64,000 bases of DNA from Octopus sinensis (lineage: Eukaryota), in the NCBI RefSeq assembly GCF_006345805.1, contig NC_043021.1, forward strand, positions 6,820,001-6,884,000, given 5' to 3'. Position 1 is the first letter of the stretch. Each line of letters begins with the position of its first letter. Made by a program: the position numbers and the translations under genes. This document shows, piece by piece, positions 7,602 to 64,000 of the stretch. The notes under the pieces are model-generated. The model was not told where the DNA came from and searched no databases. It saw only the letters and a program-made list of their open reading frames with translations.

Positions 7602-7637
7602 ATGGAGAGACGCGTAGCAAGAAGCTTCATTCAAAGG
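7602..7637 (+). CDS. USH1C: Harmonin coding exon 1 (MERRVARSFIQR)
   Basis: gccATGg start, 12 codons, phase-0 donor AGG|gtacgt. Resembles human MDRKVAREFRHK, which as I recall also ends at a phase-0 intron after codon 12. Confidence 0.9.
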
Positions 7638-8029
7638 GTACGTAGAATCATATCAAACTAACACACCTCGATATTCATGACTTGTGGAGTATGTGAAGCA
7701 TATATACTTTTACTAGGCATAATTGTATATGGTGTAAAATATGTAAATATATGCATCTATATTATTATTTATTAATTCAAAACAAATAGACTGTTTTGAA
7801 TTAATAAATAATTATTGATGTAAGTCAATTGTTATTATCGATATTTCTCCATTTTCTGGCATATATATCTATATATCTATATCTATCTATCTATCTATCT
7901 ATCTATCTATCTATCTATCTATCTATCTATCTATATATATATATATATATATTATATATATATATATATATATATATATATATATATCCCCTACTGTCCC
8001 TCTAGCTTCTAACGTCTGACCTCTGCCTG

Positions 8030-8240
8030 AAGTCAGAATGCCATGATAGATTGTTAGCTCCTACACGCATTTTTTTCTCTCCTTGTTTTTTTTCTGTGTA
8101 TCTTTCTGTCGAAGAGCATAGGCTCGAAACGTAAAAGACTTGTTCTATTTCTATTCCTGAGCGCCATACTAATACATTTGTTTGTTTGTACTCCATCTGC
8201 CTTTGTCTTTTGTTTATTTTTGTAAACCTTCCCGTTATAT
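8030..8240 (+). mobile_element. Penelope-like element terminal fragment
   Basis: GAAGAGC..GCTCGAAACGT motif and pyrimidine-rich flank ending in (AT)n; relatives at ~2895-3050 (+) and ~15345-15520 (-). Confidence 0.6.
8101..8138 (+). ncRNA. Minimal type-I hammerhead ribozyme motif (core CUGUCGA variant)
   Basis: TCTTT-CTGTCGA-A-GAGC(atag)GCTC-GAAAC-GT-A-AAAGA: stems I and II pair; palindromic ACGT stem III. Confidence 0.55.
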
Positions 8241-8252
8241 ATATATATGTAT

Positions 8253-8448
8253 ATCATCATCATCATCATCATCGTTTAACGTCCGCTTTCCATGCTAGCA
8301 TGGGTTGGACGATTTTGACTGAGGGCTGGCGAGCCAGATGGCTGCACCAGGCTCCAATCTTGATCTGGCAGAGTTCCAGATCAAGATTGGAGCCTGGTGC
8401 AGCCATCTGGCTTGCCAGCCCTCAGTCAAAATCGTCCAATCCATGCTA
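8253..8448 (-). mobile_element. SINE-E (RTE-related, (GAT)n tail) 3' end with fold-back duplication
   Basis: catcatcatcgtttaacgtcc tail; 73-bp inverted arms. Confidence 0.88.
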
Positions 8449-8719
8449 AGATTTTTCTATATGGTAGACCACTGTTTTAAATTGATATTAATCAAATTAA
8501 TATTCAATTTATCACCCTTATGATTTTAAATTTATACCTTTGCCCATATAATACAGTAAATGAATTGATTGCATCGCAATCCTTAACATTTATGTATTAA
8601 CTTTGTTGGGTACTTCACTAGCAGTATATTGGATATATGTTATCCCATGGAGGGTTGCATTTACAACCCCTATCTCAATTTGTATATATATATATATATA
8701 TAAAGGTAACTCGTGAAGA

Positions 8720-9700
8720 ATACCGTTGTTTTCAGTTATATTATTCAATTTTCTTAAAAGTATGGAAATCTTTTTAAAATCCTTCTTTGTCAGAATTTTC
8801 TTCAAATTTTCTACACTGATGTAGTTTTGTATGCTGATGTCAGCAATGGAGGCTTCTGATTAGCTAAAATTCCATAACTTTAAATACCTGTAACTTTTTG
8901 AATTATTGATTTCTTGAGAAAATGAACCAGCATTTTCGTAATCAACAGTATGTCAAACTTCTGCCCGTCTCCCCCACCCCAAACCAGCCTTAAACGTTTT
9001 TTTTAAAACACAAACCCTCATTTTGGGCTATGAGGAATATAAATCTGCAAAAAAATTGGCAAAAATCGACATTTCTAAATTACCCCACACACACATACAC
9101 CCTTTCCTTCATTTAAAAATTTTTTCTCTTTTTTTTTTTTTCAAAATATGCGGAAAAATACGGAGATTATGATTCTGAAAAAAAATTCCAAAAATCTTTA
9201 TAAATTTTTTTTTTTAAGAATTTTTTTTTTTTTTTTTTTCTAAATATGTGGAAAAATACGGACATCATGATTCGGACAAAAATTTCAAAACATTTCTGTA
9301 CTCACGGGTACGGTTTTAGGGTTAGAGTTAGGGTTAGGGTTTTAGGATTAGGGTTAGTGATGGGAAAAAAAAGTCAAAATTGAAGAAGTTGGGGGAGGGG
9401 AAAGAGGGGAGAAATTTTCCCAATGCCGATTTTTGGCAGTTTTCCGGAACCTCCGTATCCGAAAACGGAGATTTTTGGCAAAAATGATTACAAAAACAAA
9501 CAAATTTAGGAGAAAATGGGGGGGGGTGAAGCCTTTTTTTTTTTTTTTTTTTTTTTGAGATTCTGACGGTATAAAGGATTCTTAAAAAAAAGTCCCCCCG
9601 ATGAATTACTTTGAGAAGGATTTGGTTATTTGTCGAGCGACCAAATCCTTGTTTCCTTGCAGTGGAAATAAATAGTCTGTATCGCATTATTTTTCTTTAA
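8720..9700. mobile_element. Unclassified, probably DNA-transposon/Helitron-derived remnant
   Basis: Internal ~98-bp-period direct repeat (9144, 9242) and a degenerate TTAGGG tract; no termini found. Confidence 0.3.
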
Positions 9701-9936
9701 TAGGGGAGAGAACTCTGAGAGGAATTTCGTAAAACGGTGTCCAGAAATTTATGGCTAAATCACTAGAAATCATTATTCCTGCTTTTAGAGGTTGTGTACG
9801 TGGATTTAGGGACCAGTGTTTCGTAGCCCCTGTTTCATACGTCGTCTATAAACCTCAGTTGTTGATCTTAAATTGTCTCAGAAGCCATTTATGACTCAGT
9901 GTTATACAACCGCTATAAGAGTTGATAATCTGTTAT

Positions 9937-10732
9937 ACTCTTTTATTCTTTTACTTGTTTCAGTCATTTGACTGCGGCCATGCTGCAGCAGTACCCTAAG
10001 TCGACCAAATCGACCCTAAGACTTATTCTTTGTAAGCCTAGAACTTACTCTATCGGTCTCTCTTGCCGAACCGCTAGGTTTAGGGATATGTAAACACACC
10101 AGCATCGGTTGTCAAACGATGGTGGGGACAAATACAGACACACAAATACATATATATATATATAATATATATATATATATATAATATATATATATATATA
10201 TAAATGACTCTTTTACTTGTTTCAGTCATTTGACTGCGGCCATGCTGGAGCACCGCCTTTAATCGAGCAAATCGACCCCAGGACTTATTCTTTGGGAGCC
10301 TAGTACTTATTCTATCGATACCTTTTGCCGAACCTCTAAGTTACGGGGACGTAAACACACCACCATCGGTTGTCAAGTAATGTCGGGGGGACAAACACGG
10401 ACACACAAATACATGCATGCATACATACATACATACATACATACATACATAATACATACATACATACATACATCATACATACATACATACATGCATACAT
10501 GCATACATGCATACATACTACATACATACATACATACATACATACACACACACACACACACACACACACACACACGACGGGCTTCTTTCAGTTTCCGTCT
10601 ACCAAATCCACTCACAAGGCTTTGGTCTGCCCGAGGCTATAGTAGAAGAGACTTACCCAACGTGCCACGCACTGGGACTGAACCCGAAGCCATGTGGTTG
10701 GGTGGTAAGCTTCTTACCACACAGCCATGCCT
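9937..10732 (-). mobile_element. SINE-B 3' part (9937-10205) plus full SINE-B (10207-10732)
   Basis: Tail ACTCTTTTACTTGTTTCAGTCATTTG, internal microsatellite, tRNA-like head; the CCTTGGGCAAGTG core resembles the CORE-SINE domain (from memory). Confidence 0.9.
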
Positions 10733-62320: not shown

Positions 62321-62404
62321 TTCCCTGGATTTACCTACATTCGTAGCAGAGCTGAAGTCTATCATCAATGAACCTGCAAAAATTTGTCTTTTTGATGAAA
62401 TAAG
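62321..62404 (+). CDS. USH1C: Harmonin coding exon 3 (S-SLDLPTFVAELKSIINEPAKICLFDEI + AG)
   Basis: Acceptor tcttacag|T, donor AG|gtaaaa, 84 bp, phase 2 to 2, in frame with exon 2. Resembles human [28 protein letters not shown]. Confidence 0.93.
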
Positions 62405-62461
62405 GTAAAACCAATTCCAGTAATCACCTCGGCTCCTTTTTCTTTGCATTTAATGTTCCCT

Positions 62462-62930
62462 CTGCTGCTGTTGCTGTTGTTGTTGTTGTTGTTGTTGTTG
62501 TTGTTGTTGTTGTTGTTGTTGTTGTTGTTGTTGTTGTTGTTGTTGTTGTTGTTGTTGTTGTTGTTGTTGTTGTTGTTGTTGTTCTTCTTCTTCTTCTTCT
62601 TCTTCTTCTTCTTCTTCTTCTTCTTCTTCTTCTTCTTCTTCTTCTTCTTCTTCTTCTTCTTCTTCTTCTTTTCTTCTTCTTCTTCTTCTTCTTCTCCTCC
62701 TCCTCTCTTCTTCTTCTTCTTCTTCTTCTTCTTCTTCTCCTCCTCCTTCTTCTTCTTCTCCTCCTCCTTCTTCTTCTTCTTTTTCTTCTTCTTCTTCTTC
62801 TTCTCCTCTTTCTTCTTCTTCTTCTTCTTCTTCTTCTTCTTCTCTTCCTGTTCTTGTTATTGTGGTGCTTGTTATTGACATTGTTGCTGTTGTTGTTGTT
62901 GTAACTGCTGCTGATACTGCTGCTGCTGTT
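62462..62930. repeat. (GTT)n-(CTT)n compound microsatellite at the start of intron 3
   Basis: Read directly. Confidence 0.95.
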
Positions 62931-63203
62931 GTTGCTTAACCCCCCCTCCCCCTGGTCAGTTCACATCCAACTGACTTAGAATCATAGGCAGATACAGCTG
63001 ACTGTGTGGGCAAGAAGTTTATTTTTCAACTTTGTGGTTTCCAGTTCAATCCCACACTGTGGCATATTGCTCGAGTGTCTTCTACTAAATCTGTGAATCA
63101 ACCAATACTTCGTTGTAGAAATTTGGTTGAGAGTCACTTACCTGGAAGCCTGTCGACGAGACGGCCCAGTTCTTAGGAGATTGACTTTATTTCTCACCTC
63201 ACC

Positions 63204-63318
63204 TAACCCTTTAGCATTTAAACCAGCCATATCTGGCCAGTATATTGTTTTATGTCCAAATTAGCCAGATCCAGCCTCTCATACCCACCCTACAATGTCA
63301 GTCTGAAAAAGTAAATTA
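63204..63318. mobile_element. MITE family G, left part only
   Basis: taaccctttagcatttaaaccagccatatc... matches the start of family G. Confidence 0.7.
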
Positions 63319-63545
63319 TCATCATCATCATAGTCATTTAGCGTCTATTTTTTCCATGCTGGCATGGGTTAGATGGTTTGAGAAAGCTGCACCAGGCTGC
63401 AGTCTGTTTCAGCTTGGTTTCTATGGCTTTCTGATGCCATCCACTCCATAGACTGTGACGGGTGCCATTCACGTGTCACTAGCACGGGTGCCTTTTACAT
63501 GCCACTGACACTGGTTATGACTACGAATTTCACTTGGCTTGATAC
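63318..63545 (-). mobile_element. SINE-E, degenerate
   Basis: (CAT)n tail and E motifs. Confidence 0.65.
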
Positions 63546-63951
63546 TAACAGAACATTAGCACAGTGCCAGAAAGTTGAGGAGAGGACTAGACAATTAAAT
63601 CGATCACAGCCCTAACTCTCTCTCCCCAGCTGCCACATCCTAGATGTTGTGCTAGGTCAAGGACAGGGGATCAAGAAGGTTTCTATGTCTACTCACGACT
63701 ACATGAGCCCCCAAAACAATTAGTGATAGCATGGTACATGCTAGCATGTCACCCTCAATTTTAAGTGACTGTTGTGGTATCATGTTATCGTATCATATTA
63801 TCTCATGTTTAACAATACTCTGTTATATAATGCTGTATTTATTACTTAACACTATCACCGTATGTAATGATACTTCATTGCATGGTGATACTATATTGTG
63901 TAATGATATCATGTTCAGTTTGGAACTTTTTTTTTTTTATTATTTTTCCAG

Positions 63952-64000
63952 ACCTTTAGTACCTCTGAATCAACAGATAGCTTATGATTCTCTTTGTCCT
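63952..64000 (+). CDS. USH1C: Harmonin coding exon 4, cut by the window edge (R-PLVPLNQQIAYDSLCP)
   Basis: Long T tract then tttttccag|A, in frame with exon 3. Resembles human PLIPLKHQVEYDQLTP. Confidence 0.9.

Follow-up and report, generated by a model that had tools for sequence, protein, structure and literature searches.

We conclude, with a probability of about 95%, that a stretch of Octopus sinensis DNA of 64,000 nucleotides (nt; NC_043021.1, GCF_006345805.1, positions 6,820,001-6,884,000, forward strand; hereafter the window) carries the 5' portion of the USH1C (harmonin) orthologue, from this species or from a genome that matches it at every residue compared. Harmonin is a scaffold protein of sensory hair bundles. 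Four GT-AG coding exons on the + strand, totalling 36 + 65 + 84 + 49 = 234 nt across 56.4 kb, encode 78 residues, and an alternative first coding exon lies within intron 1. The features are:

7602-7637, + strand: exon 1a (coding part), 36 nt, encodes MERRVARSFIQR, ends in phase 0
7638-43565, + strand: intron 1 of the exon 1a transcript, 35,928 bp, rich in repeats, holds exon 1b
28229-28267, + strand: exon 1b, alternative first coding exon, 39 nt, encodes MSDSEFRLNLEIA (isoform X1)
43566-43630, + strand: exon 2, 65 nt, encodes VKKLILKEEETRLFDVLREYQ and two bases of a Ser codon
43631-62320, + strand: intron 2, 18,690 bp, phase 2
62321-62404, + strand: exon 3, 84 nt, encodes (S)SLDLPTFVAELKSIINEPAKICLFDEI(R)
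62405-63951, + strand: intron 3, 1,547 bp, phase 2
63952-64000, + strand: exon 4, first 49 nt, encodes (R)PLVPLNQQIAYDSLCP, acceptor tttccag/A (slash, splice junction), interrupted by the window end

Start codons, reading frames and splice sites are all intact across these exons. Exon 1a opens in the context gccATGG, its ATG being the first in frame past a stop 27 nt upstream, and closes at the donor AGG/gtacgt. Exon 2, which covers the end of helix alpha1 and helix alpha2, has the acceptor tttttcag/GTG and the donor GAG/gtcagt and ends in phase 2, while exon 3 has the acceptor cttacag/T and the donor AAG/gtaaaa. S34 and R62 arise from the split codons AG/T and AG/A, and splicing yields a product of 78 residues. 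In relatives exon 4 is 132 nt and extends into PDZ1, and past base 64000 the sequence is expected to run into ...IIPSATKKLIRLENLENGSLGFSLRGG and PDZ1. An earlier note on this DNA had proposed four GT-AG exons with consistent phases, and both their exact positions and the 78-residue product were reproduced from the DNA. Its exon inventory was correct for these four and overlooked a fifth coding exon, 28229-28267, within the intron 1 that it had claimed.

A hidden Markov model (HMM) was built from the harmonin N-domains of 45 other proteins, with the O. sinensis and O. vulgaris proteins excluded, and compared with all 3,954 six-frame fragments of the window. The top four matches were exons 1a, 2, 3 and 4, on the + strand and in HMM order (E = 2.2e-10 for exon 3, 6.3e-5 for exon 4, 1.5e-3 for exon 2 and 0.74 for exon 1a). 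Because the four best matches are exactly these exons, in order, a chance origin of the exon set is excluded.

The peptide itself is recognizably harmonin. It matches Pfam PF21219 (USH1C_N) over profile positions 1-73 of 74 with E = 5.4e-24 and 84.5 bits (cut-off 27), the next Pfam family being CCM2_C at 0.05. Among PDB entries, human harmonin (2kbq, 3k1r and 5f3x) scores about 1e-18 (best 1.1e-18) and whirlin 0.33. A HMMER search of 1.8 billion cluster representatives returned 71 relatives, of which the named ones are harmonins (Octopus vulgaris, chiton, fishes); relatives named harmonin were found in molluscs, nemerteans, annelids, fishes and frogs, with whirlin reaching only 5e-12. The cluster of the best match includes the O. 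sinensis protein XP_029651136.1, taken up below. The O. vulgaris orthologue CAI9740676.1 is 95% identical over the N-domain, differing at four positions, and the peptide is 48% identical to human harmonin. A word-indexed protein search with the 78 residues gave no match although a 95%-identical protein is in the collection, a limit of that tool with short queries and no proof of absence. Together with the structural match described below, the Pfam, PDB and HMMER results bear out the earlier note's claim of a harmonin orthologue: harmonins are the named best matches in the HMMER check that it had proposed, and the best match is not whirlin, PDZD7, delphilin or RTEL1. The same note had called the gene hidden, which it is not, being already in RefSeq as XP_029651136.1 ("harmonin isoform X2 [Octopus sinensis]"), whose residues 1-78 are identical to the peptide at 78 of 78 positions (100%) and whose residues 1-12 are the exon 1a product.

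The predicted fold leads to the same family. AlphaFold models the 1a isoform as a five-helix bundle (predicted local distance difference test score, pLDDT, 81.7) with helices at residues 3-16, 19-35, 38-48, 56-64 and 67-76; this model was built from a 14-row alignment and partly echoes the family. It superimposes on harmonin NPDZ1 (3k1r_A) with a template modelling (TM) score of 0.96 at 48% identity, and its top four Foldseek matches are harmonin at 47-48% identity, followed by the harmonin-homology domains (HHDs) of RTEL1, CCM2, whirlin and PDZD7 at 13-20%. The 1b isoform is likewise predicted as a five-helix bundle (pLDDT 77.8), with harmonin closest by Foldseek (TM 0.76-0.86).

That the exons belong to another HHD protein (whirlin, PDZD7, delphilin, CCM2 or RTEL1) has a probability close to nil. 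Such proteins do share the five-helix fold, at TM of about 0.8 for whirlin HHD2, the PDZD7 HHD, the CCM2 HHD and RTEL1 HHD2 and with Foldseek TM values of 0.8-0.86. However, their identity in structural alignments is 13-22%, against 48% for harmonin, their sequence scores are negligible at E-values of 0.05 or worse (the values for CCM2_C and whirlin given above), and they occur in different domain contexts. Additionally, a RefSeq protein of harmonin architecture contains this exact peptide. Assignment to harmonin is thus retained.

We also considered that the exons might be what is left of a pseudogene amid repeats, either decaying or not expressed. The huge introns, the 56% of the window that matches elsewhere within it and the origin of all transcripts considered in other species would suit such a remnant. 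Against this, frames, start codons and splice sites are all intact, no exon overlaps any repeat, and the peptide is 95% conserved with O. vulgaris and 48% with human. The exon structure is, moreover, preserved in Argonauta and O. bimaculoides, and spliced transcripts of the orthologue occur in other cephalopods. A pseudogene is therefore very improbable, and an intact harmonin gene remains the preferred reading.

Beyond its identity, the gene has a feature that the earlier note missed: two alternative first coding exons, 1a and 1b, 20.6 kb apart, each joined in phase 0 to the common exon 2 according to the RefSeq models and the window DNA. Exon 1b is preceded, 9 nt upstream, by an in-frame stop and closes at the donor GCG/gtaagc, and its product equals residues 1-13 of isoform X1 (XP_029651135.1) at 13 of 13 positions. 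X1 begins with MSDSEFRLNLEIA and is then the same as X2 from V13 on; the two RefSeq isoforms show no difference from the part of the gene in the window and are the same gene.

Comparison with other cephalopods indicates, with high confidence, that conserved alternative first exons exist, two in octopods (1a and 1b) and three in decapods (1a, 1b and 1c). In Argonauta hians the annotated isoform has a 1b-type first exon, MSDIDLALRKNFETK, with the donor GTAAGT (L005 10001-10045, BAAFZT010000066.1). An intact but unannotated 1a-type exon, MEKQLARRFIHK/GTAACG, lies 2.6 kb upstream of that annotated first exon (L005 7348-7383), its length and the exon order being as in Octopus; the protein collection searched held no 1a-type Argonauta protein. 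An assembled octopod transcript (P0085) is of the 1b type. Transcripts assembled from a cuttlefish-like species, 94% identical to Acanthosepion pharaonis USH1C, carry the N-termini MMEKQVARHFLEE (1a), MFWDEELESDLLSE (1b) and MDLRESQDKLWLKK (1c), each type being found in 17-29 contigs that are 2-2.6 kb long and have an unbroken coding sequence. All three first-exon types recur in another decapod lineage, whose protein is 79% identical.

The cuttlefish-like transcripts are 99.9-100% identical 3' of the exon 1/2 junction and diverge exactly at it, and their 5' leaders of 215-335 nt have no mutual similarity. Thus, these are alternative first exons and not cassette exons following a common leader, unless the assembled 5' ends fall short of a non-coding exon common to them. 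The 1a type resembles the vertebrate start MDRKVAREFRHK and that of chiton, MERRIARNFYNK, so 1a is the ancestral form.

These data bear on the concern that exon 1b is an artefact of gene prediction and 1a the sole real first exon. Exon 1b is just 39 nt, was missed by the family HMM and is known in O. sinensis solely from the RefSeq model, all of which would fit an artefact. However, 1b-type N-termini recur in the Argonauta model, in the octopod transcript and in transcripts from two or more decapod lineages, where the sequence past the junction is identical, and the upstream stop and gtaagc donor of the octopus exon also speak for it. We regard an artefact as unlikely, and treat exon 1b as a genuine second first exon.

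The window was additionally scanned for a third, 1c-type first exon. Of 408 phase-0 ATG...GT mini-ORFs (open reading frames) compared with decapod and octopod first-exon peptides, none was convincing; the best candidate, MSTGVRRAEFEK/GTGCTC at 22324-22359 (+), is faintly 1a-like with a poor donor and is probably a chance match. The same scan of the Argonauta locus gave no third first-exon candidate.

What the two starts exchange can be read against the known binding mode of the domain. The canonical ligand of an HHD, of which 277 are catalogued for harmonin, is an amphipathic helix held between alpha1 and alpha2, and in human harmonin R10 (alpha1) and R31 (alpha2) form salt bridges with cadherin-23 (PMC8048344). 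Exon 1a encodes residues 1-12, most of alpha1. Direct alignment comparison shows that R31 is retained as R30 in octopus, while exon 1a supplies I, and exon 1b E, at position 10; both first-exon types have hydrophobic residues at positions 5 and 9 counting back from the junction (V5/F9 and F5/L9, by direct reading). Altered binding specificity between the first-exon isoforms is speculation at this stage. It is conceivable, if doubtful, that promoter choice gives cell types harmonins with different partner preferences by way of these alpha1 variants in the first 12-15 residues; hair cells, photoreceptors, and gut or sucker epithelia are the cell types in which such a choice might operate.

In genes such as the clustered protocadherins and UGT1A, alternative first exons linked to promoters stand in arrays and are spliced to common exons. 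The harmonin arrangement is similar in that several first exons with their own leaders are all spliced to one exon 2 in a single phase. It differs in scale, as the variable exon contributes 12-15 residues, about half a helix and not a whole domain, and exists in two or three copies.

The genes examined, those of Octopus, Argonauta, the annelid Owenia and the fish Betta, all have intron 1 before V13 in phase 0 and intron 2 after YQ/HQ in phase 2, and in the last three of them exon 2 is bounded as in Octopus. Intron 3, of phase 2, splits the R codon of DEIR/PL; it is present in Octopus, O. bimaculoides, Argonauta and Owenia and absent from Betta; in Betta splendens exon 3 is 144 nt and the next intron follows KRSR. 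The earlier note had matched the first two intron positions to human USH1C, and both positions do agree, in codon and phase, with those in Betta splendens, used here as the vertebrate proxy for human exon borders, and in Owenia. Human splice-variant names in papers (c.36+1, c.104+1, c.105-) yielded nothing usable for exon borders; the placement of human c.216 in exon 3 (PMC7229850) fits the fish layout.

Octopus and vertebrate harmonins (PDB 2KBQ, 3K1R, 5F3X) both begin with a five-helix HHD, continue with three PDZ domains and finish in a hydrophobic motif at the C-terminus. In contrast to the vertebrate gene, that of octopus has an extra intron in DEIR/PL, lacks the fish intron after KRSR, has introns 10-60 times longer and uses alternative first coding exons, and its protein has I10 in place of R10.

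Several observations weigh against an unqualified reading of the window as a working harmonin gene of vertebrate type. For expression and junction use in O. sinensis the evidence is the RefSeq models together with transcripts from other cephalopods. The PDZ domains are past the window end, which cuts exon 4 at base 64000, and PDZ1-PDZ3 and the C-terminal motif were read from matching proteins: the O. vulgaris orthologue (P0001) has USH1C_N and three PDZ domains, and the O. sinensis protein P0072 has the C-terminus ITYF. As human R10 corresponds to I10 in exon 1a, ligand binding in octopus may differ in some respect from the vertebrate mode. Finally, annotated cephalopod harmonin isoforms are without the highly charged PDZ2-PDZ3 segment seen in fish, chiton and nemertean proteins, the maximum fraction of E, K, R and Q in 40 residues being 0.40 in cephalopods and Owenia and 0.65-0.88 in chiton, nemertean and fish (P0072, P0086 and P0076 versus P0004, P0013 and P0090). 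This charged, coiled-coil-like segment is either lost or present in unannotated isoforms.

The warning in the earlier note that such micro-exons are easily mis-annotated holds true of relatives. The O. bimaculoides protein XP_052832798.1 ("harmonin, partial"; L004 1001-1102, CM046625.1) has FALSY+SSLDLP... as its first residues. FALSY is a translation of the intron 2 acceptor (ttt gca tta tct tac ag/T), so exons 1 and 2 are missing from this model. The same model has apparently intron-derived sequence (...LLAFCQNLKPVSPTLPNLGIIKLHFCVLFILFV...) inside PDZ2. Both A. pharaonis USH1C models have no USH1C_N match and a low-complexity start. With their N-terminal micro-exons lost or garbled, the O. 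bimaculoides and A. pharaonis models are an unsafe basis for comparative studies of cephalopod Usher genes.

The picture we propose is that exons 1a (7602) and 1b (28229), which probably have separate promoters, would be joined alternatively to exon 2 and then to exons 3-4, together encoding the N-terminal HHD. The full protein would continue, mostly past the window, with three PDZ domains and the C-terminal ...ITYF. By homology with vertebrate harmonin its product may act as a scaffold protein, in which the amphipathic helix of a partner (cadherin-23 in vertebrates) would bind between alpha1 and alpha2 and the HHD would pack on PDZ1 to bind SAM-PBM adaptors (Sans, ANKS4B). A harmonin orthologue would also be expected to bind myosin VIIa and to be located in hair bundles or microvilli. 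Expression in O. sinensis, binding partners and tissue role are inferred, as are the roles that the earlier note had suggested in the statocyst, a lateral-line analogue and photoreceptors. Our literature search found no papers on cephalopod harmonin.

The surroundings of the exons are dominated by repeats. In all, 20% of the window matches the Argonauta locus as interspersed repeats, which make up nearly all of the blastn matches between the two; exon 3 is the sole unique collinear match, the other exons being too short for blastn in this comparison. Neither Rfam nor a tRNA scan gave a match in the window, Pfam gave none for the ten longest non-low-complexity intronic ORFs, and no second gene was seen in the window. 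In O. vulgaris, where the gene spans 101 kb, and in Argonauta, a clathrin-adaptor sigma-subunit gene follows the harmonin gene on the opposite strand.

A 170-bp unit forms a tandem array of 8 copies, 92-98% alike, at 5766-7126, its end lying 476 bp before the ATG of exon 1a. Another array of this unit, with 4 copies about 91% identical to the first, lies at 44777-45428, 1.1 kb downstream of exon 2, and a single inverted copy at 31712-31872. A unit of 184-186 bp resembling a short interspersed nuclear element (SINE) is found at 129-680 (+), at 48771-49432 (-) and in about 20 dispersed copies, singly or in short tandem arrays and in either orientation throughout the introns, and is present in the O. 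bimaculoides and Argonauta loci too; ARAGORN and Rfam recognized no tRNA origin for it. A G+C-rich repeat of 66-67 bp (...CCGGTGGCACATAAAAAGCACCATCCGAACGTGGCCGATGCCAGC...) makes two short tandem arrays on the same strand, at 40354-40618 and 58376-58670. Very long uninterrupted trinucleotide runs comprise (TGT)38 then (TTC)92 at 62469-62855, starting 65 bp past the exon 3 donor, and (AAT)125 at 50457-50830 in intron 2. An ORF of 136 residues at 13230-13640 (+), ...RIPSIRHLPYSERLVSLGMDSLKLRRLATDL...HFFTLRVAEAWNKLP..., has no Pfam match and resembles the C-terminal tail of a non-long-terminal-repeat (non-LTR) retrotransposon ORF2.

The finding of this gene as such matters little, as harmonin is conserved across metazoans and the octopus gene is an ordinary orthologue, already annotated in RefSeq with both isoforms. 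The only point that goes beyond the databases is comparative: two to three alternative first exons, with different alpha1 starts, are kept in cephalopods. Conserved from octopods to decapods, they exchange one wall of the HHD binding groove. In animals that have both microvillar photoreceptors and mechanoreceptors resembling hair cells, they thus provide a small, testable example of how a scaffold domain might be tuned through its promoters.

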